This document shows, piece by piece, positions 18,200 to 43,234 of a stretch of 64,000 bases of DNA. Both the position numbers and the translations under genes were made by a program. The notes under the pieces were generated by a model. The model did not search any database and was not told the origin of the DNA. It saw only the letters and a program-made list of their open reading frames with translations. How positions within the stretch are numbered: the first letter of the stretch is position 1; each line of letters opens with the position of its first letter. Source of the stretch: Phyllobates terribilis (taxonomy: Eukaryota); NCBI RefSeq assembly GCF_046119375.1, contig NW_027362771.1, positions 180,668,001-180,732,000 of the forward strand, in the 5' to 3' direction.

Positions 18200-18820
18200 C
18201 CAGCATTATGTCAGAGGTACAGAGCGTCCGGTCTGCACAATGCCACACTCCCCACCGAGCAGCACACGTGACAGGTATGGCATACTACACCCTGCAGCCG
18301 TAAAGCAGACCCGTGACAGTAACCGTGAGCACACATGGCTGTCACCTACCTCCAGCTTCTCCCTCAGCCGCTTGTCTACTATCACTTCCCAATCACTCCC
18401 GGCATGCTCTGCGCACATACGGTAGCCATAGAGACCAACGTCGCCAAATCCCCTATAAGCGAATTATGCAGCAGCACAACCTGGCGGCGCGTCCGGTGTA
18501 CTGCTGCTTATCTGATACGTACAAAGCGCATGTGGAAGTTGGAGATTTTAGTTTGCCCCAAATAAAAATGGCTGCACGTGTTCCGCGTGCTTAGAAACGT
18601 CACGGGGTCACGTGCGCACAATCCAAGATGGCAGCTTCCTGTGCGGTTTCGGAGGGGTTCATAAGAGAGTTGTAAAGGTGAAAGACAGATGGAGGGAGAC
18701 AGGTCAGCCCATAGAGACCAAGGCTACCCTCCGTCCGCGGAAAGGAGAAGATGGGAGAGCAGAGGCGGAGCTCACCAGAAATGCCACAGGATGCTGCAGA
18801 TGGCCATGGAGACCAGTGAG
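18200..18820. promoter_or_regulatory. CpG-rich putative bidirectional promoter between RPAP3 (-) and ATP23 paralog a (+)
   Basis: Local CpG enrichment. Candidate RPAP3 5'UTR exon donor GAG|GTAGGT at 18350/18349 (-); ATP23a ATG at 18689 (+). YY1-like AAAATGGCTG 18565-18574 and AAGATGGCAG 18625-18634; CACGTG E-boxes at 18575 and 18609. Confidence 0.6.
18689..18815 (+). CDS. ATP23: ATP23a exon 1
   Basis: ATG 18689 to ACCA|GTGAGT; ends [14 protein letters not shown], phase 1, compatible with exon 2. Confidence 0.85.
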
Positions 18821-18867
18821 TGACAAGCAGCCTGCACTCATGTCATATGTGTATAATGATCCAGCCC

Positions 18868-18912
<45 letters not shown>

Positions 18913-21900
18913 CTGTATGTATATTTTAAAAATTGTACATTCACACTGAAGGCATCAAAACTATGAATTAACACATGTGGAATTATATACTTAACAAAAA
19001 AGTGTGAAACAACTGAAGATATGTCTTATATTCTAGGTTCTTCAAAGTAGCTACCTTTTGCTTTGATGACTGCTTTGCACACTCTTGGCATTCTCTTGAT
19101 GAGCTTCAAGAGGTAATCACCGGAAATGGTCTTCCAACAATCTTGAAGGAGTTCCCAGAGATGCTTAGCACTTGTTGGTCCTTTTGCCTTCACTCTGTGG
19201 TCCAGCTCACCCCAAACCATCTCGATTGGGTTCAGGTCTGGTGACTGTGTAGGCCAGCTCATCTGGCGTAGCACCCCATCACTCTCCTACTTGGTCAAAT
19301 AGCCATCACACAGCTTGGAGGAGTGTTTGGGGTCATTGTCCTGTTGAAAAATAAATGATGGTCCAACTAAACGCAAACAGGATGGAATAGAATGCTGCTG
19401 CAAGATGCTGTGGTAGCCATGCTGGTTCAGTATGCCTTCAATTTTGAATAAATCCCCAACATTGTCACCAGCAAAGCACCCCCACACCATCACACCTCCT
19501 CCTCCATGCTTCACGGTGGGAACCAGGCATATAGAGTCCATCCATTCACCTTTTCTGCGTCGCACAAAGACATGGTGGTTGGAACCCAAGATCTCAAATT
19601 TGGACTCATCAGACCAAAGCACAGATTTCCACTGGTCTAATGTCCATTCCTTGTGTTCTTTAGCCCAAGCAAGTCTCTTCTGCTTGTTGCCTGTCCTTAG
19701 CAGTGGTTTCCTAGCAGCTATTTTACCATGAAGGCCTGCTGCACAAAGTCTCCTCTTAACAGTTGTTGAAGAGATGTGTCAGCTGCTAGAACTCTGTGTG
19801 GCATTGACCTGGTCTCTAATCTGAGCTGCTGTTAACCTGCGATTACTGAGGCTGGTGACTCGGATAAACTTATCCTCAGAAGCAGAGGTGACTCTTGGTC
19901 TTCCTTTCCTGGGGCGGTCCTCATGTGAGCCAGTTTCTTTGTAGCGCTTGATGGTTTTTGCAACTGCACTTGGGGACACTTTCAAAGTTTTCCCAAGTTT
20001 TCGGACTGACTGACCTTCATTTCTTAAAATAATGATGGCCACTCGTTTTTCTTTACTTAGCTGCTTTTTTCTTGCCATAGAATTTGTATTATTGTCTATT
20101 CAGTAGGACTATCAGCTGTGTATCCACCAGACTTCTGCACAACACAACTGATGGTTACAACCCAATTTATAAGGCAAGAAATCCCACTTATTAAACCTGA
20201 CAGGGCACACCTGTGAAGTGAAAACCATTTCCAGTGAATACCTCTTGAAGCTCATCAAGAGAATGCCAAGAGTGCGCAAAGCAGTCATCAAAGCAAAAGG
20301 TGGCTACTTTGAAGAATCTAGACTATAAGACATGTTTTCAGTTGTTTCACACTTTTTTGTTATGTATATAATTCCACATGTGTTAATTCATAGTTTTGAT
20401 GCCTTCAGTGTGAATGTACAATTTTCATAGTCATGAAAATACAGAAAAATCTTTAAATGGGAAGGTGTGTCCAAACTTTTGGTCTGTACTGTGTCTGTCT
20501 ATCTATCAAGCTGACTCCCATCACTTTCTGTCCCTCAGATCCATACACCAGGCTCCTTTTAGATGCCATGAAGAGATCTGGTTGGTAAGTGTCACTCATG
20601 GATCAGTAGAATCCCTCCTTTTTCCACTACAGAATGCAGTTGTCTCTATGAAATGTAAATGAAGGAAGATTCCGGGGATCCCATGTCATTGTGGCCATAG
20701 ACAGGCAGCTTTAGAAGGAAACCTATGTGTACAATGTCCTATTTTAGTGTCTGTTTGGGCACGAAGACTCTTTCCTCTCCTTAGTTACTCTTTTAGAAAC
20801 AAAAAAAGTCTTGTATTTATTAGATTTTACTCACTATTATTAACACCATTAATTCCACATCATCATCACTGTCCCCATTGGGGCTCACAATGTGAATCAG
20901 TATGTCTTTGATGTGTGAGCGGAAACCTGGGTACCTGCAGGAAACCCAGGAAAGTGTGCCATGTACCCATCACTGTTCCGTTGTATGTCTGGGAGGGTTC
21001 TCTCAGAGATGGGATGTATACACATGGGTCTTTCCTTATCTTTTCTCCTGAGATACGTCCTTAACCGATTTGATGAATAGATAATGACGGTAGTATTGAT
21101 AGAGAAGCTGTTCTACCACAAGGACATTGATGTGCCCAGGAGAAGGACTTCTGTCGCTTTATTGATAATATGTACAACTCTGGCACTGACATATGACAAG
21201 ACTTTGTTGCTTCACATATAGTGTCCATCCCACATTTCGACCTTTGAGAAGGTTACCTGTACCTGTGTGAGGTCGGCAAGGAGCTTCAGAATGTCACAGA
21301 TACTCACTGCGACACTGTCCGCATTCTGAGCCTCCATGCCGACCTCTCACAGGTACTGATCACCTTCACAGGATCAAGTGGTCAAAGCCTTGGATGTACA
21401 GTATCTGTTTATTCACTTGTCAGATTCATTAAAATACTCTTGAAACAAATATCTAAGTCTTGTCATACTCAGTGCCGGCTATGCATATTATTTGTATAAT
21501 AATGGGCCCTTACCATGTTTCATTCCTTAATTGGCACAGGAGTCTATTTAGAGGACAGAATGACCCCCAATAATGGCAGGTACGCTGAAAACCTCACTCG
21601 CATATCAGCATCTGTATATTCATAGTGACAAAGCTGCTGCAGCACATTGAATAAAAAAAGCAATGCCAAGTGGGCTGACTAGTTAAGGTACACTCTTGTC
21701 CCCTTTATTGGGATTGAAGACGGCTGAGTCGGTAAGCCAAACCACCAACTCAAACTCCTCAATTTCCCTGACTCCCGACTCCACAGCACGGCCTCACTAC
21801 TGAGCGTGTACATAAAGTGCAGCACAGATTCATCTCCACTAAAAGCTCAGATCCTTCGATCAGGAACAGAACAGAACAGACATTTATAGGACATTTCATA

Positions 21901-24675
21901 ACATTCCCAAATTCTTATGAAAACATTTACAGCACATCCTGCATTGTACTACTGTACCCAATTTATTATATATTTTAGGAATCGGTCCATTTTATACTGA
22001 CTCCAACTCCACAGCCCTTATTGAAGGGAGTATTTAGTGGACAGCAATAGAGGGAGATCTGGGTGTTCGCAAGTGCTAGATCAGGATTGTCTTGTCTCAC
22101 CAGGTAACGGAGCATCTTGGTGACAACCTCACTTTATTGGCCATAATAACACACTTGAAATGTTCTCTGCTTTCTTGAATGGACAAAATATAACAGTTGT
22201 GACATGACAATAAAGCATTGATGTCAATGTGTTGCAGCTCTCCAGAAATGTATTTAAGTGTCTGCATCTTTTTTTTTTTTTCAGCACAGTTTCCCGAGAC
22301 CGACATTTTTCCTGTGAGGATTGTGATGGATCAGTAAGCGGAGGCTTTGATGCAGATACGTCTGAAGTAAGTGAGCATCTTAAAAAGATTATCTTGAGGC
22401 TGGGGGCTACACAGTGACATTGGCAGCGACACCTGTTGTGCGACCAAGATTCACTCGGAGCTGCTGCTACATCACAGCTTGCAACAAGCAAGTCGCAAAA
22501 AATCTGATGAGGTTGGACTTCTTTTGACTTTCTTGTCGCAGGACCATTCAATGTGCCTCATTCACTTGTATCACGCTGCGATGTAACAGCAGCACTGAGC
22601 GAACCTTGGTCGTACAACAAGTGTTGTGGCCAAAGTGACCGTGTAACCCTAGCCTTAATATATTCCACATGTCTAGTCCCCCCTAGGTCATCAGTATCAG
22701 TTCAGTGTGAGTGACACAGAGCACTCCCACCGATCAGCTGACAGCCCTCAGAGGCCGACTGACAGCTATGTGTTCAGCAGACTACAACAGTTCCATATAC
22801 CAATGACTGACCGCTGCTGAGTACTGCGTCTATTTTCCATTCCCATCCAGCTTCTGCCAGTGCAGCCATCAGCTGATCGGTGAGGGTACCGGACGTCGGA
22901 CCCCTGCCGATGAACTATCCTATGGATATTGGATAGGTATTGGTAGTTTTAGTCCTGGACAACCATAAGGATTTCCTGTAAAACAGTAGAAATACAGTCC
23001 GATGTCTGAACAACCTTTCCCTCCTTTCAGATTGTGTTGTGTCAGAATAACATCCACAATCAGTCACACATGGACCGCGTGGTGACACACGAGCTGATCC
23101 ACGCATTTGACCACTGCCGTGCACACGTAGATTGGTTTAATAACATTCGCCACTTGGCATGCTCTGAGGTAAGCGGATCACTTACGTGCATTATTATTAT
23201 TATTATTTATATAGCGCCATTGATACCATGGTGCTGTACATAAGAAAGGGTTATATACCGAATACAGATATCACTTACAAACTAATGATGATAGACTGAA
23301 GATGGCTTTCTATACGTGCCCATTGTCAACTGATCTCTTGGTGATCTAGTAGCAAATTAAGCTGGATTACTAGCATTCTAAAAGATCTGGTCCAACTGTT
23401 GCATCCTTAAAGCAGTTAAAGGGATATGCACCCAAAACATAAAGCGCAAAGGTGGCAAACAAGATGGCCGAACCGTCTGTCGACACGTATTAAACGGAAG
23501 TAACTGCCACAACAAAACAGAAAAACCTTTGTCTCTGCTACTTCTTCGCCTTCTGTTACAAGACCAGTTTTACAATGTGGGTGCAAATTATTATTTTTTT
23601 TTTTTGATGATTGTTTCCTTTATTCGCATGTAATGGAAATGTAAATGTACAATATTTTTCATAATCCATATTTATTACAAGTAAAATGTTAGACATCACG
23701 AGAAGTGTCCATATGTGTATATGGCTTTGTGATTGGAGTACAGATAAAGTACCACTGCAGCGGGTATTTTTATTTCCCTTCTGTATGCTATCAGTATTTT
23801 ATATTCACAGTATGCATTAAAATACTCACCGATCCCTGTCTTCTTCCATTTCAGCGTTGCTCTGGTCTCTCTTCTGCAGTTGTGACCAGCCAGCTCCCAC
23901 AGCCTTTCTAGGTGGACTTTCAGTCACCTTCTCAGGCCACATTCACACGTTCAGTATTTGGTCAGTTTTTTACCTCAGTATTTGTAAGCCAAAACCAGGA
24001 GTGGGTGATAAATACAGAAGTGGTGACGTGTTTCTATTATACTTTTCCTCTGATTGTTCCACTCCTGGTTTTGGCTTACAAAGACTGATGTAAAAAACTC
24101 ACCAAATAGTGAATGTGGCTTAGAAGAACATGTGTTTCTCAGTAGTGACCAGTAAAGATGGCGGTTTGAAGAGCCGATGCTCCGCTTCGATATTCTTGTG
24201 ATTTACATTTTGTCATTTTCTATAGATCAGAGCTGCCAATCTCAGTGGAGACTGCTCACTTAGTAATGAAATTAGCCGCTTTAACTTTGGCTTGAAACAA
24301 CATCATCAGGTATGTTCCGAAATGTGGGTATCTGTAGTGCCCCGAAACATTTTATTGATGGATCCATTCAAATAGCATAATAAGGGGACACCAGATCTAG
24401 AAGTGAATAATAAGTGAGCGGCAGATAAATGATTCTTTCTTTGAGGTAAAAAATTGTTTAAAAACAGGCAGGGAAATGTTTTACCTCACAAAAAGAATAA
24501 GCTGCGGTCCTGTCTGTATACTCTTTTGCGTCCTCTCCTTCCCAGGAGCTATAGTATGATCAGACCGTGTTCCTGTATGATCAGACACAGCCATTACACA
24601 GTACACAGCAGGGGAACATTTATAAGATTATCTCAGCACAGGAACATTTTATTTAAACACATCCAGTTGTGGAAT

Positions 24676-24711
<36 letters not shown>

Positions 24712-26231
24712 CAAGATCTATTGATTAAAATGTACTTTGCTCATGGCAAACCCCTTTAAGTCTTGTAGATATCTTGCACAGGACCCTTGCACAGTCGGTG
24801 AATCTTTTGGTGGCATAACAAGGAAAATTGAACTGTGACTATAGCGCACTTCTAGGTTTTACACCACTGAAAAGTAATTAATTCTAATTAAATGTTCGCT
24901 GTCTCTTCAGATGACTGAAGTGAACAAACTCCGAGTCCAGTGCTGTGTGATATGGAGATTTGTGCTAATTGCAGTCAGATAGTGGGTCGGAGTTCCTGGG
25001 ACATAATTGAATAACTATCACCAAGCAAAATATTAAAAATATAAAACAAAATTTGTCATTAATATCAAACCTTTATTACAAACAACTATACAAAAGCCAA
25101 AAATCCTTTAAAAAAAAACATAAAACCCACATAAAAGGAGAAATTGGGCAGTGTGGACTCAAAAGTATTAGTATATTAAGAGTCCATATATCCAGAATAT
25201 AAAGGCATAGGACTTTAATATAATACAGCACATAAGGACTTTAATACAACCAGGCCAATGAGAACATATGAACCCCCTGCACCACCAACACTCCTTCAAT
25301 CAATAGAAATTACCTATACCCACCATATGCCATTATGAGTCCAACCATACTTCCTAGTACCCTGACTCACGTTTCGCGTGCAGCTTTGTCAGGGGGTCCT
25401 CTTCTTGGGACAACACTCATGGAGAGGAGAAGTTAAAATGTGTTATAATTTTGTAAAAAGACCTTGGAGGGATTGTATGGAATGGAGAGGTGAAAGGTTC
25501 ATAAATCCTTGTTGTGGAATGGTCTTTACTCCAGGCCAGTCCTCTGGTGCACTGTATTGAACAGCATTTCAATAAAGGAATCCAAATGTTTCTCTTAATG
25601 TTTCCCATAGTGGATAGGATGTTGGTAGATTAGACAGTAGGCTCTGTTCACATCAGAGGCTGCACCGCATGTTCCTTCCTTCTTACTGTAAGACGTAGGC
25701 TGTGCTATTTCTTAAAGGACAGTGAGAGACCCCATCAGCCAGGTGATGCATCCATCTGCTGCACAAATTCTTTTTTTCTGTTGGTTTTCCAGTTTTGTTT
25801 TTTTCATACAGAGAAACCAAATTCCTAACACACATGAACTAAGCCTTGAATAAAAGAACGTAGTGGGCATTCTGTTGTATTAATGCATGCTCTGTTCATG
25901 TCTTAATCGTAATAAGAAACCAATGATATTGATTTAATGCTGCGTGCAAATAAAACATGTTATTGGACATGCATGATATGAAAATGATCTCTGGTATAAC
26001 CTAACCTGTTCCTTCTTTCCCTACCAGGCCTGTGTAAGAGACCGCGCTCTCCGCTCCATATTGGCAGTCAGGCAGATCAGTCGGGAGGCAGCAGAAAAAG
26101 CCGTCAATGACGTGTTTGAATCCTGCTTTAATGACCATGAACCATTTGGTCGAATTCCTCATTGTCCACGGGATGCCGATATGGCACACAGAGATTTTAA
26201 AAACCGCGGAAGACATTATGCAAACCTTTGA
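18689..26231 (+). CDS. ATP23: Mitochondrial inner membrane protease ATP23 homolog, paralog a (226 aa); exons 18689-18815, 20539-20584, 22285-22366, 23031-23168, 24226-24309, 26028-26231
   Basis: Six GT-AG exons (127+46+82+138+84+204 = 681 nt) give an uninterrupted ORF: [141 protein letters not shown]...EPFGRIPH...HYANL*. HExxH peptidase M76 motif present. Confidence 0.95.
18868..18912. repeat. Compound (GT)n(AT)n microsatellite
   Basis: gtgtgtgtgtgtgtgtgt directly followed by atatatat…. Confidence 0.9.
18927..20491 (-). mobile_element. Second copy of the 6271-7902 Tc1 family, inverted, with one terminus truncated, in ATP23a intron 1
   Basis: Transposase 20078→19026 ([16 protein letters not shown]…GSYFEEPRI) with in-frame stops at about 19779 and 19287. 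Right end GTGTCCAAACTTTTGGTCTGTACTG at 20491; the left TIR lacks its first ~65 bp next to the microsatellite. Confidence 0.92.
20539..20584 (+). CDS. ATP23: ATP23a exon 2 (46 nt)
   Basis: ccctcAG|..[14 protein letters not shown](C)|GTAAGT. Confidence 0.92.
22285..22366 (+). CDS. ATP23: ATP23a exon 3 (82 nt)
   Basis: poly-T-cAG|[27 protein letters not shown]|GTAAGT. Confidence 0.95.
23031..23168 (+). CDS. ATP23: ATP23a exon 4 (138 nt, HELIH zinc site)
   Basis: ctttcAG|[46 protein letters not shown]|GTAAGC. Confidence 0.96.
24226..24309 (+). CDS. ATP23: ATP23a exon 5 (84 nt)
   Basis: tatAG|[28 protein letters not shown]|GTATGT. Confidence 0.95.
24683..24710. repeat. (TTA)n microsatellite
   Basis: attattattattattattattattattatt. 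Confidence 0.85.
26028..26231 (+). CDS. ATP23: ATP23a exon 6 (terminal)
   Basis: accAG|[70 protein letters not shown]; AATAAA near 26445. Confidence 0.95.
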
Positions 26232-27717
26232 ACTGCCAAAAATCCCCTATAAATCAGGTTTCAGATGGATTCTTATATGATCTAGTAATCGTGAATGAGG
26301 AATTGCTCCCTTCTAGCAGATTTTCTCAGAGATGATGGAATGTATTAGGATATGCCTCAATTTCTGTTTGTCTGTTTATTGTATGTCCTTTTTAATTTTA
26401 TATTTAATTCTGTGATTTTTAAAATTGATTTATGTTTTGTGAGTAATAAAAAAGTTTATATGACAATGTTCTCTTTGGTCACTGTAAGCAAAACAAGGTA
26501 TTATGTACTTTCTCATCTGTGGATTCACTCGACTCAAACTTTTACAGTGGAATTTACAGTTCTGCCCTCCACACCCAATAAGTACTGAGAGCACAATACA
26601 CTTAATATCCTATAGGGGTTGTCTCAAGATTCTATCTTCAGAGTGCATCGCTTCTCTGCTTGCGCTTCTGATGATTGACAGTTTGTGTCCGCAACATGGT
26701 TGAAATGCTGGATGCGACTGTTCACTCTTCCAGGCTGCTGGCAGAGGAAGCGTTACCTCTGCAGCATCGCAGGGGAGCTGAGGTTGGTCAGATCCAGCAA
26801 TCTAGCCAGCATTAGAACAGCACTTTCAAGCTGTATAGCAAACCGCTTACAAGCACGCTCTCCTTTCCTAGGAGACCATCAGCCTCCGGCTTATTTTGCA
26901 TCAATATTTTGTGTTATTTTGGGTCCATTTTGGCAGACTGTTATATTGAAGTCATTCTCCCTTTGCAGGTCAACACCTCTGCTTGTCCCAGTGTTGAGCA
27001 AGTTAAAAAAAAAAAAAAAAAAAAAAAAAACATTTTTGTAATGCACGCTACAGAATTGTAATTCCCTTTTACTTGAATTGTACTATAGTGGAATTTTAGT
27101 AATTCTGAAAATATTCTACAAGTACTTCACTGTATTAACCAACTTATGAGACACTTTGTGAGTGTGACCTTTCTTGGTGATACAGGACAGAGTGCATGAG
27201 AGGAAGACTATGTTAGAAGACCAGTTTGGAGCTTACCGTATTTCTTGGAGGGCAGCCCAAGATATGCAGTCTGCCCCAAAGTTATGCTGTTCCAGCTGAC
27301 TGGATCTCCAGCTGATATCCGTCCTCCTTAGTGTAAAAATTGAAAGAGAACTGATTAGCACGCCAATAACGCAGTATAAGGTGGAGCTGCTGTTCTGCTG
27401 TGGTATAGGAAGTGTGGAGACACTGGCACCTCCCCTGGGCATAATACTACTCAGACAACACAGGGTGAAGGTAAAACAGTGTGGCAATAAGTTATTGAAC
27501 CACAAAGCGGACAATAACATCTAGAAGAGTCCCAGCAATACACAAAATGGTGAAAAATTACAGAGACTCACCCATCCGCTGGCTCGCCAGGATTTGAGCA
27601 GCTGCAAATTTGAGGCTTCCAGGGCCAACTACCACAACAAGTGGCCCTGCGCTTTGGGTGGGCACCCACAGAGAGGAGGTAGTGGCAAACTTAGGAAGCT
27701 AACGGTCCAGCGAGGTA

Positions 27718-28232
27718 CAGTTGAAACCAGAAGATTATATAATAAGACACATATGCATGTTTCAATATCTGACATGAAATCAGAATAAACCTTTCCCGTT
27801 TTAAGTCAATTAGGATTACCATAATTTTTAACATTTGCCAAATACCAGAATAATGAGAGAGAGAGAGAATGTTTTAAGGTATTTTATTAATTACTGCAAA
27901 GTCAAAAGTTTACATACATTTCATTAGTATTTGGTACCATTGCACTTAAACTGAATGACTTTGGTCAAACGTTTGGTATAGCCTTCCACAAGCATCTCAC
28001 AATAGTTGGTTGGAATTTGGGCCAATTCCTCCTGACAAAACTGGTGTAACTGATCTAGGTTCATAGGTCGCCTTGCTCGCACCTGCCTTTTCAGCTTTGT
28101 CCATACATTTTCAATAGGATTGAGATCAGGGCTTTGTGATGGCCATTCCAAAACATAGACTTTGTTATCCTTAAGCCATTTTGTTACTATTTTGGCAGTA
28201 TGCTGCCGGTCATTGTCCATTTAGAAGACCCA
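27718..28232 (-). mobile_element. 3' fragment of a Sleeping Beauty-like (IR/DR) Tc1 element
   Basis: Terminus TA|CAGTTGAAACCAGAAG and inner DR GTCAAAAGTTTACATACAT. C-terminal transposase [52 protein letters not shown]…FKCNGTKY closely parallels the SB C-terminus as I recall it. Confidence 0.8.
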
Positions 28233-28812
28233 TTAACATATATCCGCTGCAATAATCAGATGTGGACTATATAGAAGCACCAGATAGCGGCTACACAGCA
28301 CCCTTTGATGAAGGAGATCGACAAAATATCCGAAACGTGTAAGGTCAGGACGGAGCACTGAGACTTCCGTCCCTGTGCTGAGCTGTGATGTCACACACCG
28401 CTGCTGGATCTTCACACGCGATCTGCTGAGCGGCAGGAAAGCCACCGGCCGGGGCTCCCTGCGTGCAGGCACCGCCAATACGCTTGCACACATACTGGAC
28501 TTATTCGTCAGGTATTTCACCTGGGACTTTGCATAGACCTTGGATTGAGTGAGTGGTCTGAGAACCCCCCCCCCTTCTCTTTCTTCATCCCTCTGTCTGC
28601 GAAGACTTGGGTAATGTGTCATTTTTATGCAGTTTTATAGGACATTGTGCAAAACTAATTTATCAGTCTGGGAGCTGTGTGTGTCTGAATACTGGCAGCA
28701 TTTGGTATTGTAATTTAACAATGCCTTTGGACACTGACCATTGGGAGACCAGGTACTGATGAGGTTCGATTTTGTTTTTGTCTACACCTGTAAGCCATAC
28801 TGGTTATATATA

Positions 28813-30372
28813 CACTGCTCAAAAAATAAAAGGGAACACTTAAACAACAGAATATAACTCCAAGTAAATCAAACTTCTGTGAAATCAAACTGTCCACTTA
28901 GGAAGCAACACTGATTGACAATCAATTTCACATGCTGTTGTGCAAATGGAATAGACAATAGATGGAAATTATTGGCAATTATCAAGACACACTCAATAAA
29001 GGAGTGGTTCTGCAGATGGGGACCACAGACCACATCTCAGTACCAATGCTTTCTGGCTGATGTTTTGGTCACTTTTGAATGTTGGTTGTGCTTTTACACT
29101 CGTGGTAGCATAAGACGGACTCTACAACCCACAGAAGTTGCTCAGGTAGTGCAGCTCATCAGGATGGCACATCAATGCGAGCTGTGGCAAGAAGGTTTGC
29201 TGTGTCTGTCAGCGTGGTGTCCAGAGGCTGGAGGCGCTACCAGGAGACGTGGAGGGGCCGTAGGAAGGCAACAACCCAGCAGCAGGACCGCTACCTCCGC
29301 CTTTGTGCAAGGAGGAACAGGAGGAGCTCTGCCAGAGCCCTGCAAAATGACCTCCATCAGGCCACAAATGTGCATGTGTATGCACAAACGGTTAGAAACC
29401 GACTCCATGAGGGTGGTATGAGGGCCCAACGTCCACAGATGGGGGTTGTGCTCACAGCCCAACACCGTGCAGGACTCTTGGCATTTGCCACAGAACACAA
29501 GGATTGGCAAAGTTGCCACTGGCGCCCTGTGCTCTTCACAGATGAAAGCAGGTTCACACTGAGCACATGTGACAGACGTGACAGAGTCTGGAGACGCCGT
29601 GGAGAGCGATCTGCTGCCTGCAACATGCTTCAGCATGACCGGTTTGGCAGTGGGTCAGTAATGGTGTGGGGTGGCATTTCTTTGGGGGGCCGCACAGCCC
29701 TCCATGTGCTCGCCAGAGGTAGCCTGACTGCCATTAGGTACCGAGATGAGATCCTCAGACCCCTTGTGAGATCATATGCTGGTGCGGTTGGCCCTGGGTT
29801 CCTCCTAATGCAGGACAATGCCAGACCTCATGTGGCTGGAGTGTGTCAGCAGTTCCTGCAAGATGAAGGCATTGAAGCTATGGACTGGCCCGCCCGTTCC
29901 CCAGACCTGAATCCGATTGAGCACATCTGTAACATCATGTCTCGCTCCATCCACCAATGTCACGTTGCACCACAGACTGTCCAGGAGTTGGCAGATGCTT
30001 TAGTACAGGTCTGGGAGGAGATCCCACAGGAGACCATCCGCAACCTCATCAGGAGCATGCCCAGGCATTGTAGGGAGGTCATACAGGCACGTGGAGGCCA
30101 CACACAATACTGAGCTTCATTTTGACTTGTTTTAAGGACATTACATCAAAGTTGGATCAGCCTGTAGTGTGTTTTTCCACTATAATTTTGGGGGTTGACT
30201 CCAAATCCAGGCCTCCATTGGTTAATAAATTTGATTTCCATTGATGATTTTTGTGTGATTTTGCTGTCAGCACACTCAACTTTGTACAGAACAAAGTATT
30301 CAATGAGAATATTTCATTCATTCAGATCTAGGATGTGTTATTTGAGTGTTCCCTTTATTTTTTTGAGCAATG
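28813..30372 (+). mobile_element. Tc1 (DD34E) transposon between the two ATP23 paralogs
   Basis: TA|CACTGCTCAAAAAATAAA…TTTATTTTTTTGAGCAATG|TA. A 312-aa ORF (29175-30113) has FTDESRF, QDNARPH and DLNPIE with 34 residues between D and E. The N-terminus is damaged (ATA at the expected start 29110, frameshift near 29160). Confidence 0.92.
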
Positions 30373-31065: not shown

Positions 31066-31073
31066 TGACGTCA
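31066..31073. promoter_or_regulatory. Perfect CRE palindrome (TGACGTCA) upstream of ATP23b
   Basis: TGACGTCA 78 bp upstream of the ATP23b ATG, close to a YY1-like AATATGGCCGCC near 31038. Confidence 0.4.
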
Positions 31074-31150
31074 TCTTCCAGCGCTTGAAGGTCAGGTACC
31101 TGCTCTGACAGCTGCATGTGCTTGTGTAGCACCAGGGTCAGACTCTCGGT

Positions 31151-31301
31151 ATGGGTGACGGGCAGGACGGAAGACATGAGCACGGGTACCACCTGTTCCC
31201 TGAGAGGGACCCCCGCAATCCGAAGCAAGAACCGTTTTTATCCAGGCTGTACGGGCTGAAGATCAGATGTAAAGCGAGGCTGAAGATCGCAATGGACACC
31301 A
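31151..31301 (+). CDS. ATP23: ATP23b exon 1
   Basis: ATG 31151 to ACCA|GTAGGT, phase 1; contains GYHLFPER. Confidence 0.88.
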
Positions 31302-34300
31302 GTAGGTGTGATGGCTCCGGCTCTGAGTACATACATTGCGTTATGTTACACTATGCTGTAGTTTGTGTGCTGGAGATAGCCTTATTGTCTCTTTGTGGGG
31401 GGGAAGGAGCCCATCTTTAAAGGGGCCGTTTTTTTTCTCCCTACTTGAATACGTGTATTTAGGACTAAAAATAATTTTTGCAATTGGATTCCATTAAAAA
31501 TGTTGCACCGTTTGCTTTCTATGGCCTCTGTGTGTACTGTCTATTGCTGGCTGCAGAGTGAGTTAACTGTTCATCCAACAGAGCTCATTCTGATTGAATG
31601 ACATGGGAGCTGGTAACTGTTGTACGCCTTTTCCTGAGCTCCTCTCTGCTGATTTATGATGACAAGCCACATCAAAGTTGGATGTACAGGGAAACAAGAG
31701 CCTGGAAAAACCAAATGGTGCAAATGTTTTAATGAAACCCAATTGCAAAAATGATTTTCAGCCCCAAACACATGCATTTAGGTTAAAAAATAAATTAGTG
31801 ACTGGCTTCCTCCTTACTGCCCTCTGTGGTTGCACCCATGTTGGTGATTACTAATATTCCTATTATATAGTAGAGGTTTACATTATCCCATATATAAAAT
31901 TAGTGTTATAAAAAACAGCAGTCCTATGTCACTGTATTCATATATTGTGTCCCTCATTAGGTCCACATGTCAAGTTACTTCTAGATGCCATGAATCAGGC
32001 TGGCTGGTGAGTTTTTTAACTTCATCAGTTTTATACATTAAAAAAAATTACAGACCAGAAAAAGTTGCTTGTTGGATGCTTGTAGCCATGAGATATGAAC
32101 ACCATCATCCTTTGCACTGACTTATTATTTATAGCCCTCATTGATACACCTTTAAAAGGATTGGTAGAATTTTTAAAGGGGTTTTCTAGTTTCAGAAAAC
32201 CTCTGTTCCCCCTGGCTGCAGTCACTCTTAAAGAAGCACTCCTCCCATCAAAGTTTTTATCCTCTTAATATATTGCAATCATCATATTATATAGCACTGT
32301 GTATTTACAATTGCTCATTTTGCCTTATAGCCAGTTAATTCTTCTCGTTTCTCTTCTCTGTGTAGAAACAGGAAGTCTCTTGTCCCTGCATTTATCATTT
32401 CCCTCTTCATCTCCTGACCCAGCTGCCTCGCTTTCCACACTCAGCATCAGCTGATCGGTCATGAGACCGATCAGCTGATAATAGGCTTCAGCAATCAGCT
32501 GATGGTCACGTGACCATCAGCTGATTGCTGCAGCACTGATCACCTGATGGTTGCGTGACCATCAGGTGATCAGTGACGTCACTGCAGGTCCTGGAAGTAC
32601 ACTGCGGGGCGCGAGCTCGCCGCCGGACAGACAGCATCGCCGAGGAGGAAACCGGGGGCCGCCGGAGAGGTGAGTATGAAGGTTTTTTTTTTTTTTTTTT
32701 TTTTTAACTGGCACATGGGCTGGGAGAAGCAGGCTGCTGCACCTCCCATCCACGCTGCTCTCACTGTTATCAGCCAGAGCAGCGTCGGATGAGAGTAGTA
32801 GCATTCTTCTCTCCCGACCCGGGTACGAGCCGTGGTGTGATTTTGCGCCTATTGATTTACATTGAAACGCAGCAAATCCGCATGTATAGATATTATACAT
32901 GCAGGTTTGCTGCAATTCAATGCAAGTCAATTTACCGTGGAATCACGCCTGAATTGGTAGTGCTGCGGTTTGTGCCACAATGATAATCCGCAGCGTAAAT
33001 TTCCGCATCATGTGCAGAGCACATGCAGATTATCATTGGAATACATGGCAGACTTCTTACCAAGCGGTTTTAATGCGTTTCCGCGGCAGAATAACCACCG
33101 CGCCAATACATTAAAACCGCATCGTATGCACACAGCCTTAACTGGGTAGGAAGGCAAAATGAGCAATTGTAAGTACACAGTGCTATATAATATGATGATT
33201 GTTATATATTAAGAGTATACAAAATGTGATGGCAGGGCTTCTTTAAAAACAAACAAACTGTGCTTCACTCACCCTCCCCGGGTCCAGTGCTGAATCTCTG
33301 CCGCTACCCCAGTGTCTGTTATTGTCTGCAGAGCTGTGGATCTCGGTCTTTGGCTTCAGTGCTGTGCGACATGACTTCAGGGCTGCAGAATATAACACTC
33401 TGGGAGCAGCAACAGAGACTCATCGCTGGACCGAGGAAGAGTGAGTACAGAACAATTTATTCTAAAACAAACTCCAGCCGGGGGGACAGGGGTTTTCTAA
33501 AACTAAAGACCCCTTTAATGCTGACTATTGATTACAGTTTATATTTTCACACTTTATTATTCATATTTTTGTTTCAATATAACAAGATCTGCCCTGAAAT
33601 GTGATCTTGCATGTATTTGTTGTTCCTCAGCACCGCATACAGAGAGAGACATTTTTCGTGTGAAGAATGCGATGGAAAAGTAGGAGGAGGATTTGATTCT
33701 TCTACCTCCGAGGTAATTCCAGCAAGTATTGCCTGTCAGTAAAGCTCTATTTGCGGAGGTCCAGTCAGTAGGAAAGCAGTAGCAGACTTCTCTTTCCTAT
33801 ACACTAGTCATCTGCTTTATCATTCGTGTATTTGTCAACCCCCATTCACCCAGCAAAATTTCCTATGGCTTATAGCAGGCTGGAATGTCTTTTTTTTTTT
33901 CTTTCATTTTTTATTGTATGGAAAAGCATAGTCTGCTGCAATATGTCAGGCTGAGACATCTCTAAAATATATATTATACCCCTCCTATGGGCTCGTATGT
34001 ATGCGGAGATGGTGGCATACACTAACGTTATGTCAATATTATAGCTAAGTTCACAATTGATAATTTTTCATCTGTTTTGTCAATTTTTGATATGTTTCTA
34101 TACATTAATTAAGAAATTATACAAGGTAAAATACAGTTTCTTATGTTATTAGTTGCATTTGAGCCATTAAAATAGATGCCATATGGGTGGTGTCCACATG
34201 GAATCCATTTTTTTTTTTTTTTCTTCTTGCTTATTCATTTAAAAATATAGGCGCGTCTCATTCATAAATGGGAACAGACCTGCACATGCTATGTTTTTTT

Positions 34301-37300
34301 GTTTTTTTTTCTTTTTCTCCAGAACATTGGTCCATGTATCAAAATGTTCATGTGAGCCTAACCATTCACTAATATTTCTCTGTATGTGGCTCGTTTTCCA
34401 CATGGCCAGCACTTGGATTGAATGTGAACGTTCCCTTATGTGTGTGGTGTTTGAAGAGTTGGGATGACTTTATATTAAGATGTGCTTAAGAGGTCATATG
34501 CTGTAAGAAAAGTTAGAAGTTATCTAGTATAAAGTGGACAGTATCTGTTTATTCTCCTTTAGGGGCACATTTATACAGTGGCATGTAAAAGTTTGGGCAC
34601 CCCTGGTCAAAATTAATGTTATTGTGAACAGATAAGCAGGTTGAAGAATAAATGATCTCTAAAATGGCTTAAGTTAAAGATGACACATTTCGTTTGTATT
34701 TTAGCAAAATAAAAAATATATTTAAATTTTTTTTTTACATTTTAAAAATTACTAAAAGAAAAATGGACAGCTGCAAAAGTTTGGGCACCCTTGGAGATTT
34801 GTGTGCTCAGATAACTTTTGACCAAGGTTTCAGACCTTAATTAGCCTGCTAAGGTCATGGCTTGTTCACTATCATCTTTAGGAAAGGCCAGGTGATGCAA
34901 ATTTCCCAGCTTTATAAAAACTCAGCCTCCTCTAACCATGTGCCAAAAAACTGCAGCCATGGGTTCTTCTAAGCAGCTGCCTAGCACTCTGAAAATGGTG
35001 GATGCCCACACTATAGGAGAAGACTATAAGAACATAGCAAAGTGTTTTCAAGTTGCCCTTTCCTCAGTTCTAAATATAATTAAGAAATGGCAGTTAACAG
35101 GAACAGTGGAGGTCAAGATAAGGTCTGGAAGACTAAGCAAAATTTCAGTGAGAGCTGGTCGTAGGATTGCTAGAGAGGCAAATCAGAATGCTTGCTTGAC
35201 TGCAAAAGACCTTCAGAAAGATTTAGCAGACTCTGGAGTTGTGGTACATTGTTCTACTGTTCAGAGACTCCTGCACAAATATGGCCCACATGGAAGAGTC
35301 ATGAGAAGAAAACCTCTCCTGCGTCCTCACCATAAAATTCAGCGTCAGAAGTATGCAAAAGAGCATCTAACCAAGCCTGGTGCATTTTGGAAACAAGTCC
35401 TGTGGACCGATGAGGCTAGAATATAACTCTTTGGCCACAATGATCAAAGATATGTGTGGAGAATAAAAGAGCACATAATTTCAGGAAAAGAACATCTCGC
35501 CAACAATTAAGCATGAGGTAGATCAATCATCCTTTGGGGTTGTGTTGCAGCCAATGGCACAGCGAACATTTCACGGGTAGAGGGAAGAATGGATGTAATG
35601 AAATTTCAACAAATTCTTGATGCAAACATAACACCATCTGTAAAAAAGCTGAAGTTGAAAAGAGGATGGCTTCTACAAATGGATAATGATCCTAAACACA
35701 CGTCAAAATCCACAATAGACAAGCTCAAAAGCGCAAGCTGAAGGTTTTACAATGGCCCTCAGTCTCCTGATCTGAACATCATTGAAAATCTGTGGCTAGA
35801 CCTCAGAATAGTAGTGCATGCAAGACGACCCAGTAATCTCACAGAACTGGAAGAATTTTCCAAGGTAGAATGGATGAAAATCCCTCAAATAAGAATTGAA
35901 AGCCTCTTGTCTGGCTACAAAAAGCATTTACTAGCTGTTATACTTGCAAAAGGGGGTGCTACTAGGTACTAACCATGCAGGGTTCACAATAATAGTAATT
36001 TTGACCAGGGGTGCCCAAACTTTTACATGCCACTGTACATACAGGCAAAACTGGTATAAAATAAAAGGGACTAAATGCAGATACATCTTGCAAATTGGAT
36101 CCGTGAGAGCTTCCGGTGGAGAAGAATACTGCTGGAAATAGGGACAGATTTGTGTTACACATTGCATCTCCTGGGGTCTTACACATTTGTTAATGAAATG
36201 TTATAAAGGGTCTCACCAAACCAATCACCCCCTCCACTGAGGTCAGACGGGGACGGCAGATTAGATTAGATTCTAATCCTCATTTCTGCTCTGGGTCATA
36301 TTTTCCCCCAGGAGCCTCCTAGAAAAGCAATATGACAGTTATCTTATTGAACATCCTTCAAGCATACCACACATGAATATGATATATCCATATTTCAGGG
36401 ATATATGGTGCTCCTTTGGATTGCCAGCTACCAGAACTTTTTTAATTTTACCGACAAATGCAAATATGCTCCCCATTCATGGATATATCCATGAATTTTA
36501 TAAAACTAAACTTCTAATACAAAAAGCCTTAATATTGCTTGACTTTGTTCTCATTATGAAGTACAGACAAAACGGTTGCATAATGTGAAAGCATTGATGC
36601 CCCTGCATTTAACACCTATGTGCCAGTGGAGGTGTACAGGGACACATCTGCTGGCCTAAATGGTTATCCAATATTGACAGCTACCTGTTAATTTCTCTGT
36701 GTATGCAATCCATGTCTGTTCTTCATCAGATAACCTACTTCAATTACCTGTTCACATCGGGGGGTGCAGGCAGTGATCCAGTTCCGCTAGCCTTTGATCA
36801 GTATAACTCATAACTCCACTTCTGAAACTCTCATTATATTTGTCTTTTTTCTAGATTGTTATATGTCAGAATAATATTAATGATCAAAGAACCATGAACA
36901 GAATGCTTACACATGAGTTGATTCATGCTTATGATCACTGCCGCGCCCAAGTTGACTTTTTAAGTAACATTCGGCATTTGGCCTGCACTGAGGTATGTTC
37001 ATTTTCACATTCTAGTATTTTAGTAACTTTTTAGAAAAAAAAATATTCTTTTTATTTTAAGCCAATGACTGTTGACGTAAAGCAACTAAATTAAGAGCAT
37101 CGCTTAAAGGGTTTGCACCAAAAATGCAAATCGTATAATCATAGGATGGGCGATAACTTGCTGATTACTTGGGGTCCAATCACTGAGGTCCCCTCTGATC
37201 GTTAGATCAGGGCTCTGGAGCTGTAGTGTGCATGCAGGACCATAGCATTACTCAAACTAGTCATTTCAAAGTCTCCTGTTGTTGATCTCTGGGGTCAGGC

Positions 37301-40300
37301 CAAAAGCGATCGGCAAATTATCACTTGCAGTTGAGGATAAAAGTTTACATACAGCTTAGCCATTTTCATTAAAACTTTTTTTTTTTTCTTGAAATTTTTA
37401 ATCCTAGTACACAATTTCCTCTCAGGGTCTATATTTCAAGAATGTGATTTGTTAGAATAATACTAGACACTTATTTTTTCCGCCTTTATTTCTGTCATCA
37501 CATTTCCAGTGGCTCAAAAGTTTACATGCACGTGGTTCTTATTTAGTAATATTGTCTTCCTTGGGTCACAGGGTTTGGACAGCCTCCCACAAGCTTCTCA
37601 CAATAAGTTGCTGGAGTTTTGGCCCATTCCTCCTGACAGAACTGGGGTTACTGGGTTAGGTTTATAGGTCTCCTTGCTTGCACATGATTTTTCATTTCTG
37701 CCCATATACTTTTTTTTTTGTAGGATTAACATCAGGGCTTTGTGGTGGACTCTCCATTGTCTTCCCTTTTTGTTCTACTTTTGATTCCACGTTGGACGTC
37801 TAATTGATAGCCTTTTCCATTTATTGAAGATCCATCCAAATCTGATGTCTTGAGCTATTGTTACAGTATCTCCACATATTTCACCCTTCCATTAAATTTT
37901 TTTGCCTAAACATGTTAGTATACTCGCTTACTGCCACTTTCTCCGAGATCCAGCGCTGTTCTGCTCCTCTTCTCAGTGACGTGACCACTCTTCAGACTGT
38001 CCAGCTCGATCTATGCTCTGTGTGAGCTGGAAGTCTTTTACAATGAAAGCCTTCTTCTGACTCACCATAGGCTTACATTGTAAAAGCCACTTCCAGGTCA
38101 CGCAGAGCTCAGCGTGGCCCGGAGAGTTGTAAGAGCGGTGATGTCACTGAGAAGAGGGGAAGAACCGGCGCTGGATGCCGGAGAAGGCGGCAGTAGGTCC
38201 ATTTATTAACACACGAACACTATACATCACACAGATATACACAGGTTTAGGCAAAAAAAAGTTAATGGGAGGCTTCTTCAATAAAATTATTATACAACTT
38301 TTAGATAGCATTTATCCTCAATCCATAATTAATTGCCTAAAATCCCACTGTAATATAGTAGATAGGATCATATTAAAATATTTAATACCTTATAACAATT
38401 CCATTCTAAAGGGCCTTGGCAGTCACGTGATGCAAAACCACCAATAGATCGCAAGAATGAGAAGTGGTTTCATTCACGCTGGGAAAAAAAAAAAAACGCC
38501 TACCCAATATAATTCTTTATACATAAATCCCATATAACAATTAAAAAAATACATAAAATAAGAAATTATACTATTCAAAATTTTATAGATATCGTTGTTA
38601 GATATATAATTATTGAGAACTATATTGATGAATCGCATACTATACAAAAAAATTTTTTTTACTACAATACTATATCAAATTTATTCCATTAGTTCTTTTA
38701 AATTGGTTCTCCCCTATTAAATGTATTTATTCAATTTACTAATATCAAGCTGAAATATGATTATCCCATTATGTTCTATCATATGTAAATTATCTTATTT
38801 AAACAAAAAAAATATATATATATTTTTTTTTAATTGTTATATGGGATTTATGTATAAAGAATTATATTGGGTAGGCTTTTTTTTCTGTTTTGCATATGAT
38901 GTCACTTCTAAGGTGTAACCCTTTATAAACTAGGGATTGTATGTTAACTACATTTTTGAAAAAAGCCTTGGACAGGCTGAAACGTCCACTGGAATTGGCA
39001 ATGTAATTAAAGAGCAATTATTGACTGAACACGTGAGTGCCAGGAATTGCTTCCATCCATGTGGTTGAAGCTGCTCACTAATTTTCGCTTGTGAAACCAA
39101 TAATGCAACTTGGCCTTTGTTGCCTCCTATATGTGGAGCGCACAATGCACAAATTTAAAACCCCTATAAGGAGCTTATTTACCATATAGTGATCCTTTAA
39201 GATGGCGTACACCTCCAAAATAAAGGCCGATCAGCACACAGTGACCACATTTACCTCGTTATAGGGAATGGTACCACCGGGGATTCTGTTCGAATCCAGT
39301 TTTTCAGGGATTTAGACAGAAACCTTGATGGAGCCACAAATGTTCGGCCATGACTTTATTTTCTGGAATTTTCTAAGCTACTTAAAAGCACAGTCACCTT
39401 GGAGTATGTAAACTTCTGTCCCATCTGAATTTTTATATAGCGAATGATTAATGAAAAGATCTATTTGTAGGAAAATGTGTGTCTTGTGTCCATTTTGACC
39501 ATATTACAGTTCAACTGGACTCTGCTTAGAAAATCATTCAGTAAAGATAAGGGTGGGTTACAGGCTCTGCTGTCAGAACAAGCTCACTGATAGATTCACT
39601 GTTCACTCATCCTGCAGTCTGTTATGCATGGAAGCTGTAAGATCCATACTGTCAAAGCTTATTGAAATGTCTACTTTTGAATTGCTTTAGATCCGAGCTG
39701 CCAGCCTTAGCGGAGATTGCTCCCTTGGCAATGAAATGTCACGGTTCAAATTTGGTGTAAAGCAGCATCATCAGGTATGTAAAGAGAATATCCCCCATGG
39801 AAACTCTGCTGCTCCTCCATCCAGACATCATTCTGATATAAGCCTCTTCATTGGTTACTGATCAGCAACCAAAACATATTTTGGGGATGCCTGGCAGCTG
39901 TGTTCATGAATCCTATTCATTCATAGCAAATTTCAGCAGAGTTTTCTTGTAATGGTATCTGCTATAGAATAGACCGTTGAATTTTTTTTAATATATAGTA
40001 TACTTATACTTCTTATACTACTGTAATCTTGTAAGTTAAAATGATATTGTGCATAGATTATTCCTGTGTAGTGTATCCTGCCAAAAGTGTCCAGTTTTGC
40101 TTTTATTTTCACTGTATCCCATGGTATTGCATTGTATACTGAAAATTTAAGGTCTCCTTGGCTTCACGAGTGTGCTAAGATGGGGGTGATAGGGCACTCC
40201 ATGATCACCTACCCCCCCCCCCAAAAAGGAGACCATGGGTCCTGGGATTGCACCACTTAAACACCAGAGTGGAATTTAAGGGGTTAAATTGTTAGGAGGA

Positions 40301-41814
40301 TGCTGGCTTTATACAGATAGCGGGGAACTAAAAAATAATGTAAGGAAAAATTAAAATAGGTTTTGCAAAAAATAAAGGTATAAAAATTTGGATCGTCACC
40401 CTTTTCCCAGTTTATAAATAAAGAAATTTAAAAGCAAACCTATTCAATATCAACACGTCAATTAACATCTACTCTATGAAATTAATGAACCCATATGATG
40501 AGCACCATAAAGAGTGAAAAACATTGAAACGCCAGAATTGCTGTTTTCCAGCAGCTCTACCACTATCTAAAGGAAAAAAAAAAAGATACAATCGTATGCC
40601 GCACACATCGAAACCCATAAAAAAGACAGCTCAATGCTTGAAAAACACTCCGCTTCATCAATGGAAAAATAAAAAGTTAGGAATCTTCCAAACCCCCTGC
40701 CCCTTCTACTCCCCAATGAAAACCTACAGGTTTAGTATACCCATAATCGTATTGACCTGAAGAACTTTACTGCCAGGTCACTTTTAGTGCTCAATGAAAA
40801 CCATAAAAACAAAACCCAAAAAATGTATTTATTTTTTTTTCTTTCCCCCATTTCAAACTACTTGGATTTTTTTTTTCCTGTTTTTTCAGTACATTATCCG
40901 GTACAATGAATGTTGTCTTTCAAAACTACATCTCGTCCTGCAAAAAAAGCAAGCCTCCATACGGCTATGTCAATGGAAAAATAAAACTGGTTATCGCTCT
41001 TGGAAAAAGTGTAGGGAAAAATGAAAGGACAAAAAAATTGCCAGGAGAGCAAGGGTTAATGTTCCCACAAATTAAAAGTTTTGTTACTAGGACTCCTGGG
41101 TGCTGGACAGGATTTACTCCCTGGTTGTAAGGTCTGGGCAACCTTATCCAAGTCATGTTATAAGGTCTAGCTGGTCCTTCCACCTCTTGCACTGAGAAAT
41201 AAAGCAGGTGAGTTGAGTACTGGCTCTGCTCATTGGAAGCCATGCTCTAGGCTTTAAGGGTATGTGCACACAGAGGGGTTTTTTTTCAGTTGATTTGGGA
41301 GCAAGAAGTCCTCCCAAAACTTGGAGGTTCTGCTCTAAAACCTCTACATAAAGTCTCTGTGTGCACATACCCTGCCTTTACTTACAGTGCTGCAGAACAT
41401 GAAGAACCCAGGAGACGACAGCCTTTACTATTGTGGTTGGTATCTGCTATTCCCAGCTTGTCTGCCATATTACTGCTCCAAGATATTGCTACCAGTTAAA
41501 GAAAACTGTAGAAGAGCATGTTGGTTTTGTGTTTAGCTTTTCTGCCTTGTATTAATATTTCATGCACGGCCGAGTAACATAAGACTTGTTTGTATTTATT
41601 TCCCCAATAGACTTGTGTGCGAGACCGAGCCGTTCGCTCTATTGTGGCTGCAAGGAAGTTTAGTCAAGAGACTGCAGAGAAGGCTGTGGATGAAGTGTTT
41701 GATTCATGTTTTAATGACCGAGAACCATTTGGTCGCATTCCTCATAACACAGCTGAAGCAAATATGGCATACAAGGAGTTTAGAAATCGTGGAAGATATT
41801 ATGCGAATATATGA
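31151..41814 (+). CDS. ATP23: Mitochondrial inner membrane protease ATP23 homolog, paralog b (234 aa); exons 31151-31301, 31961-32006, 33631-33712, 36855-36992, 39691-39774, 41611-41814
   Basis: Six GT-AG exons (151+46+82+138+84+204 = 705 nt) give an uninterrupted ORF: [149 protein letters not shown]...EPFGRIPHN...YYANI*. Confidence 0.95.
31961..32006 (+). CDS. ATP23: ATP23b exon 2 (46 nt)
   Basis: cattAG|..[14 protein letters not shown](C)|GTGAGT. Confidence 0.92.
32177..33514. mobile_element. TTAA-flanked MITE containing a second TTAA-flanked MITE (32232-33242)
   Basis: Outer TTAA|AGGGGTTTT…AGACCCCT|TTAA; inner TTAA|AGAAGC…GCTTCT|TTAA with about 90-bp inverted arms (…ATAGCACTGTG…ACAATTGCTCATTTTGCCT / AGGCAAAATGAGCAATTGT…CACAGTGCTAT…). 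Confidence 0.7.
33631..33712 (+). CDS. ATP23: ATP23b exon 3 (82 nt)
   Basis: cctcAG|[27 protein letters not shown]|GTAATT. Confidence 0.94.
34576..36035 (+). mobile_element. Tc1 transposon (third family), degenerate transposase, in ATP23b intron 3
   Basis: TA|CAGTGGCATGTAAAAGTTTGGGCACCCCTGGTCAAAATTA… with a perfect 40-bp reverse complement ending at 36035|[14 protein letters not shown]…[11 protein letters not shown]…VLWTDE from about 34959, followed by frameshifted [12 protein letters not shown] remnants. Confidence 0.92.
36855..36992 (+). CDS. ATP23: ATP23b exon 4 (138 nt, HELIH zinc site)
   Basis: tttctAG|[46 protein letters not shown]|GTATGT. Confidence 0.96.
39691..39774 (+). CDS. ATP23: ATP23b exon 5 (84 nt)
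   Basis: ctttAG|[28 protein letters not shown]|GTATGT. Confidence 0.95.
41611..41814 (+). CDS. ATP23: ATP23b exon 6 (terminal)
   Basis: caatAG|[70 protein letters not shown]. Confidence 0.95.
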
Positions 41815-42925: not shown

Positions 42926-43161
42926 CAGTACAGACCTAAAGATTTTTCTGTATTTTCATGACTATGAAAATTGTACATTCACACTGAAGGCATCAAAACT
43001 ATGAATTAACACATGTGGAATTATATACTTAACAAAAAAGTGTGAAACCACTGAAAATATGTCTGATATTCTAGGTTCTTCAAAGTAGCCACCTTTTGCT
43101 TTGATGACTGCTTTGCACACTCTTGGCATTCTCTTGATGACCAAACTTTTGGTCTGTACTG
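42926..43161. mobile_element. 236-bp internally deleted mini-derivative of the 6271-7902 Tc1 family
   Basis: TA|CAGTACAGACC + most of one TIR + CCAAACTTTTGGTCTGTACTG|TA. Confidence 0.85.
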
Positions 43162-43234
43162 TATTTCTATAGTGATGGTGGTTTTGGTGATGTATTTCTG
43201 TACTGACAGTGGTTCTGGTGCTGGATTCATTTGC

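Follow-up and report, generated by a model that had tools for sequence, protein, structure and literature searches.

Why should a frog carry two genes for ATP23, which is commonly regarded as a single-copy, poorly understood animal mitochondrial protease? The question is raised by a 64,000-nt stretch of the Phyllobates terribilis genome (contig NW_027362771.1, forward-strand positions 180,668,001 to 180,732,000; the whole stretch is called the window here, and coordinates count from its first letter), in which two ATP23 genes, ATP23-A (copy A) and ATP23-B (copy B), follow one another on the plus strand, 4.9 kb apart (Table 1). A first reading of the letters, made without database searches (the sequence-only reading), had taken the genes for anciently diverged tandem paralogs. 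We followed it up with comparisons of gene structure, phylogeny, synteny, selection, and transcription, and consider it highly probable that, as a whole, the locus is explained by a tandem duplication on the stem of the neobatrachian frogs, after which both copies stayed functional and would have specialised.

The HELIH-encoding exons were located by a six-frame scan, a protein-level comparison of the two halves of the region gave four matching exon pairs, and exon 1 and the small exon 2 of each copy were placed with a bird ATP23 retrieved by an exon 6 search. In the resulting splice models, all introns of both genes are GT-AG, and there are zero stops and zero frameshifts. The two intact six-exon genes of the sequence-only reading were recovered with the same coordinates, exon sizes, splice sites, and HELIH motifs, and its manual count of 127/184 identical residues over exons 2-6 was reproduced exactly upon recomputation; at the DNA level, the same exons are identical at 401/554 nt (72%). 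Outside the exons, the two genes have just two short transposon fragments in common (blastn), so that their introns can be considered unrelated, as had been noted before. Public annotation concurs with the models: the ATP23-B protein is RefSeq XP_073507959.1, the Phyllobates terribilis [quoted passage not shown]; in assembly GCA_046119375.1, the NCBI gene span of ATP23-B is 10,664 bp, in agreement with the splice model, and a 226-residue Peptidase_M76 gene ending 4,920 bp upstream of ATP23-B corresponds to ATP23-A. The equal exon sizes and phases of the two copies were rejected as evidence on this particular pair, because Xenopus tropicalis, Mixophyes, and the two Nanorana genes share the 46/82/138/84/204-nt structure, which is the general one of vertebrate ATP23 genes.

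To place the duplication in time, we relied on profile searches and phylogenetics. ATP23s of two kinds were recovered in neobatrachian frogs and of a single kind in all other sources, one gene each being obtained from Xenopus, Bombina, Spea, Pelobates, Ascaphus, a caecilian, amniotes, and fishes; for these non-neobatrachian vertebrates, the results agree with the earlier statement that ATP23 is single-copy in mammals and yeast. In a maximum-likelihood tree of 40 proteins, the neobatrachian ATP23s form a single clade (support 98/97), which splits into clade A (100/97) and clade B (100/100). Clade A comprises copy A and sequences from Dendrobates, Bufo, Eleutherodactylus, Mixophyes, Nanorana, and Staurois, whereas clade B comprises copy B and sequences from Phyllobates, Dendrobates, Rhinoderma, Bufo, Dendropsophus, Engystomops, Eleutherodactylus, Gastrophryne, Nanorana, and Rana. 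Xenopus, Bombina, Spea, Pelobates, Leptobrachium, Ascaphus, and a caecilian fall outside the neobatrachian clade with one gene each. The gene tree that the sequence-only reading had called for thus yields separate orthologue clades for A and B, which reach across Hyloidea, Myobatrachoidea, and Ranoidea. The retained second paralog is real and old; it is not, however, peculiar to this frog, the pair being common in neobatrachians.

Hyloids and ranoids are present in both clades, which argues that the duplication predates the ranoid-hyloid split and postdates the split from Pelobatoidea. With the dates of Irisarri et al. for these events (160-130 million years ago [Mya] and ~192 Mya, respectively; PMC3551647), the tree points to one tandem ATP23 duplication on the neobatrachian stem, roughly 192 to 130-160 Mya. 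An origin before Neobatrachia with losses elsewhere was rejected: approximately unbiased (AU) tests reject the grouping of either paralog clade with non-neobatrachian frogs (p = 0.015 and 0.018), and there is no second ATP23 copy within 10 kb of the single X. tropicalis gene.

Gene order is consistent with this placement and indicates which copy is the added one. The annotations of Dendrobates tinctorius, Ranitomeya imitator, Nanorana parkeri, Rana temporaria, and Mixophyes fleayi show A followed by B on the same strand at a distance of 3-5 kb, and in the last of these RPAP3 is found upstream of copy A in head-to-head orientation. The window likewise has RPAP3 head-to-head with ATP23-A, the first coding exon of RPAP3 lying ~2.3 kb from the ATG of A, and in X. 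tropicalis RPAP3 is head-to-head with the single ATP23. Since RPAP3 stands beside A in the window and beside the only gene in X. tropicalis, it is copy A that has retained the ancestral position and upstream region, B having been added downstream. The spacing between RPAP3 and ATP23 is equal in X. tropicalis, which suggests a shared bidirectional promoter region.

Both copies have evolved under strong constraint. Exact protein-guided mapping was used to splice coding sequences (CDS) from the loci of Nanorana, Mixophyes, and Xenopus, and contigs of public RNA assemblies carrying full open reading frames (ORFs) were added. Pairwise ratios of nonsynonymous to synonymous substitution rates (dN/dS) lie at 0.09-0.19 in both clades, the Nei-Gojobori (NG86) values ranging from 0.09 to 0.15 within clade A and from 0.10 to 0.17 within clade B, the least saturated pairs giving 0.145 (A, dS 0.38) and 0.166 (B, dS 0.49). 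Between A and B of Phyllobates, dS is ~1.9 and saturated. The Goldman-Yang (GY) codon model puts omega at 0.141 (A) and 0.138 (B). The two clades are under equally strong purifying selection, with omega of ~0.14 far from the value near 1 that the sequence-only reading had associated with a copy not maintained. Its view of an old duplication kept by selection is therefore borne out by the dS of ~1.9, the orthologue clade of each copy, the tandem order shared with six other frogs, and the omega values.

By family membership, too, the copies resemble each other. The translations of exon 4 match Pfam PF09768 (Peptidase_M76) with 63.2 bits (A) and 62.7 bits (B), and those of exon 6 with 45.4 bits (A) and 44.3 bits (B), where the cut-off is 25.2; the exon 5 translations are 28 aa long and, at 21-22.5 bits, fall slightly below it. 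The NCBI gene products at both loci carry PF09768, and the tree places both copies inside vertebrate ATP23. HExxH is intact as HELIH in A and B, its H, E, and H being invariant in a 51-sequence alignment, and the ten conserved cysteine columns are retained in both clades, with an eleventh cysteine in clade A, within IPHC. Structure prediction covered ATP23-B: the AlphaFold model (mean predicted local distance difference test [pLDDT] score 70, predicted template modelling [pTM] score 0.71) has disordered residues 1-18 and a confident N-terminal helix at residues 36-50; comparison with the Swiss-Prot models of ATP23 from Xenopus, human, zebrafish, and yeast gives matches of probability 1.00, with template modelling (TM) scores of 0.68-0.78 for Xenopus, human, and yeast. 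A search by sequence found no solved structure of the ATP23 family, and the fold search gave weak, non-significant minigluzincin-like matches. Yeast Atp23 is a protease of the intermembrane space (IMS) that processes Atp6; its ten cysteines form five disulfides, and Mia40 mediates its import (PMC8452992, PMC4951193). Based on HExxH, the ten cysteines, the ancestral six-exon structure, and the equally strong purifying selection in both copies, we infer that ATP23-A and ATP23-B encode working M76 zinc metalloproteases of the IMS, probably imported via the MIA40 disulfide relay like yeast Atp23. By every sequence criterion, both copies are functional.

The similarity in overall constraint conceals an asymmetry in where the copies have changed. 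Against a set of 118 non-neobatrachian vertebrate ATP23s, 11 replacements at columns conserved in at least 85% of that set are fixed in clade B, with A ancestral there, vs 0 of the reverse kind in A. Among the changes in clade B, the residue directly following HELIHA has gone from F to Y, the VDWF segment carries both W to F and F to L, and LACS, RAAN, and VSGGFD carry S to T, N to S, and S to G, respectively. The fixed changes of B beside the zinc-binding helix, around HELIHA.DHCRA.VD.., are F to Y, W to F, F to L, and H to Q. Several of the B-specific replacements flank this helix, and the B states are fixed and conserved over the whole clade. Consistently, the stem branch is 0.29 for clade B vs 0.13 for clade A, and Tajima-type relative-rate counts over exons 2-6 (five species pairs, four outgroups) give 26-37 changes unique to B vs 8-16 unique to A, with p<0.05 in 15/20 tests and a minimum of 1.5e-5. 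In exon 1, the trend is opposite, A being more changed, and is not significant in any single test. The N-terminus of B is well conserved and still carries the ancestral GYxLFPxR motif, whereas the N-terminal region of A is poorly conserved and shortened and has lost this conserved motif. This complementary pattern (core conserved and N-terminus decayed in A; N-terminus conserved and surroundings of the active-site helix altered in B) favours specialisation over redundancy, which is the less likely of the two.

Four sequencing runs labelled "RNA?" were examined for transcription; the last exon and 3' flank of B are present in X1, X2, and X4, and those of A in X2, X4, and X19. Contigs of the four runs were mapped on positions 26010-32009, from the last exon of A to the first two exons of B. 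Each run contains a 0.9-1.0 kb contig matching A at 26025-26389 or up to 26466 with zero mismatches, and the unaligned upstream part of these contigs shows the last 30 nt of exon 5 of A, which marks the junction of exons 5 and 6. The X4 contig terminates at 26466 with a poly(A) tail of 22 nt, ~16-20 nt past AATAAA. The runs are indeed RNA, since unique intergenic sequence is at zero depth in them, and in the four runs copy A is represented by an mRNA of about 1 kb that is spliced and polyadenylated. A read-through or conjoined A-B transcript is unsupported, given the zero depth of the unique spacer and the separate poly(A) site of A. As for copy B, every sampled word of exon 6 and of the 286 nt downstream is present in runs X1-X4, and in other frogs, full ORFs of both the A type and the B type are found on transcript contigs of 920-1338 nt.

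Two further observations concern the transcripts of B and the upstream regions of both genes. RefSeq lists three isoforms of ATP23-B, which differ at exon 2: in isoform X1, this exon is swapped for an alternative one ~190 nt upstream of exon 3, and in isoform X3, it is skipped, so that either isoform would lose a conserved 10-residue segment and one of the ten cysteines. Just upstream of both ATGs (18590-18640 and 31030-31080), an ATGGC-containing, YY1-like motif and an ACGTCA element were read by eye; the latter is the full palindromic TGACGTCA in B, and A additionally has a CACGTG E-box.

Taken together, these data lead us to propose the following course of events. A single tandem duplication of ATP23 would have occurred on the neobatrachian stem, after the pelobatoid split and before the separation of ranoids and hyloids. 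Copy A, with its ancestral position and ancestral catalytic core, would serve the ancestral role of ATP23 in ATP-synthase FO/subunit a biogenesis and in IMS proteolysis. Copy B, behind a new upstream region, fixed a burst of replacements at near-invariant vertebrate positions after the duplication and was then frozen by selection; it preserved the GYxLFPxR motif, which decayed in A. The most likely mechanism is that the functions of ATP23 were partitioned or specialised between the copies, which may act on different substrates or with different partners, possibly in different tissues. The sub- or neofunctionalisation suggested by the sequence-only reading gains support from the asymmetric divergence and keeps its conditional standing. 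Its boldest form, in which ATP23-B is a neofunctionalised IMS protease, or the pair a natural separation of protease and assembly-chaperone roles, existing since the neobatrachian stem in most living frog species, appears unlikely. On this reading, the changes of B by the zinc-binding helix would retune substrate choice, and the decay of the N-terminus would have cost A a partner-binding function still present in B.

Several points weigh against the proposed partition and dating. The AU p values are moderately small, and the deeper frog nodes of the tree lack resolution; the omega estimates are based on four CDS per clade; and the partition of functions between A and B is inferred from sequence alone. 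Neobatrachian substitution rates are raised in general (PMC3551647), which would inflate both stems, yet leaves the asymmetry between A and B unexplained. Finally, exons 1-2 of B (31151-32006) lack contig cover in the four RNA runs, in which copy A is full length, and the splicing of B in P. terribilis is taken from RefSeq models and other frogs. The missing cover could reflect low abundance, 3' bias, an alternative 5' end, or filtering.

The latter difference bears on the alternative that survives best, a purely regulatory subfunctionalisation, in which both proteins do the same job and the ancestral expression domain was split, for example, with one copy serving the germline, oocytes, or larvae and the other somatic tissue. 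B sits behind a new upstream region, whereas A keeps the one shared with RPAP3; A was assembled full length, whereas the 5' exons of B are uncovered; and B has three splice isoforms. A precedent also exists, in that somatic-type and testis-type cytochrome c are documented in frogs (PMC13655612), likewise as two long-lived paralogs of a nuclear-encoded mitochondrial protein; that pair differs in stemming from the early-vertebrate whole-genome duplication and being split by tissue, whereas the ATP23 pair is a lineage-specific tandem duplicate. We nevertheless regard the exclusively regulatory split as possible though doubtful: contig depth cannot rank expression in these runs, and such a split leaves unexplained both the 11 fixed replacements of B at vertebrate-invariant sites and the complementary decay of the N-terminus of A. 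Less probable still is that the copies are dosage or redundant duplicates with no functional difference, their asymmetry being a by-product of relaxed selection soon after duplication. Both copies do keep all recognisable catalytic and structural features and have the same omega today; however, fully redundant copies rarely both last more than 130 million years in every lineage sampled, and the B-specific states are fixed and conserved throughout the B clade, making this an improbable account. An assembly artefact (haplotig or collapsed allele) or one dead pseudogene has a negligible chance of being correct and was rejected, as the sequence-only reading had already done for a haplotig, on account of the 72% exon nucleotide identity, the unrelated introns, the dS of ~1.9, and the same pair in seven independently assembled frog genomes, together with intact ORFs, omega of 0.14, and transcription of both kinds. 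Co-evolution of ATP23 with a changed mitochondrial ATP6 gained no support either: according to Irisarri et al., atp6 evolves faster in neobatrachians, with no omega shift on the neobatrachian stem and the null model being best (PMC3551647). As far as atp6 itself is concerned, a link to the mitochondrial rate acceleration of neobatrachians is thus unsupported.

A paralog pair of Atp23 is not known in yeast. Yeast Atp23 shares with the frog proteins the family, the ten cysteines, and the fold (TM ~0.68-0.70 over 190 residues), at ~35% identity. Vertebrate ATP23 (XRCC6BP1/KUB3; MEROPS M76; X. tropicalis Q5BKJ4, human Q9Y6H3) shares with A and B the Pfam family, HExxH, ten cysteines, six exons of identical sizes and phases, and the predicted fold, and that of X. 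tropicalis also the RPAP3 neighbour. It differs in being one gene in each non-neobatrachian recovered vs two in neobatrachian frogs, in the 11 conserved positions changed in B, and in possessing the N-terminal motif that A lacks and lacking the eleventh cysteine that A has. The sequence-only reading had left room for the duplication being already annotated and characterised across amphibians. Annotated it is, NCBI pipelines calling both genes in many neobatrachians under one name, "ATP23 homolog"; as to its characterisation, our literature searches found no paper that describes or studies the ATP23 duplication. The pair is a conserved new variant (subfamily) of a known protease family, the genes of which are already in public annotation.

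Transposons and other repeats were also noted in the window (Table 1). The Tc1/mariner-type copy in the spacer is covered by contigs of the RNA runs at a summed depth of up to ~100,000, as befits a high-copy family abundant in RNA, and the inverted-repeat element in the first intron of ATP23-A has the appearance of a non-autonomous element of the Tc1 type.

Table 1. Features of the 64,000-nt window containing the ATP23 pair.
Feature	Position	Strand	Details and basis
RPAP3 orthologue (TPR + RPAP3_C)	1767-16351	-	First coding exon ~16187-16351; matched with X. tropicalis RPAP3 exon translations, 63-85% identity
ATP23-A (copy 1), CDS from start to stop	18689-26231	+	6 exons, 226 aa; splice model
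ATP23-A exons	18689-18815, 20539-20584, 22285-22366, 23031-23168, 24226-24309, 26028-26231	+	127/46/82/138/84/204 nt
Element in ATP23-A intron 1, terminal inverted repeats	18929-19134 and 20220-20425		~1.5-kb element; repeats of 206 nt, 95% complementary
ATP23-A HELIH zinc-binding motif	23088-23102	+	
ATP23-A 3' untranslated region	26232-26466	+	AATAAA at ~26445; poly(A) addition at 26466; RNA contigs ending at 26463-26466
Further repeated element in A-B spacer	27410-28210		Multi-copy, moderately covered by RNA contigs (summed depth 200-3,800)
Tc1/mariner-type transposon in A-B spacer, outside both genes	28810-30409		329-aa transposase-like ORF match at 29154-30110
ATP23-B (copy 2), CDS from start to stop	31151-41814	+	6 exons, 234 aa; splice model
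ATP23-B exons	31151-31301, 31961-32006, 33631-33712, 36855-36992, 39691-39774, 41611-41814	+	151/46/82/138/84/204 nt
ATP23-B alternative exon of RefSeq isoform X1	33316-33441 (bounds approximate)	+	Match from ~33331; tblastn of isoform residues 46-95 against the window
Decayed Tc1-like transposase remnant in ATP23-B intron 3	35004-35969		In-frame stops; 26% protein identity to the spacer copy
ATP23-B HELIH zinc-binding motif	36912-36926	+	Followed by a B-specific 12-residue stretch
Solo copy of the terminal repeat of the ATP23-A intron 1 element, just downstream of ATP23-B	42935-43163		34- and 64-nt stretches 100% identical

The pair matters for how ATP23 is studied. An amphibian rate study treats ATP23 as a single gene (bioRxiv 10.1101/2025.07.24.666600), and orthology pipelines and rate studies that do so risk mixing paralogs in neobatrachians. 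Substrates of vertebrate ATP23 are still being sought, for example, in a 2026 screen of IMS proteases (bioRxiv 10.64898/2026.08.20.745762). A pair held under selection for more than 130 million years, with A conservative in the catalytic core and B in the N-terminal motif, amounts to a natural experiment, and comparison of the two copies could show which parts of ATP23 serve which function.

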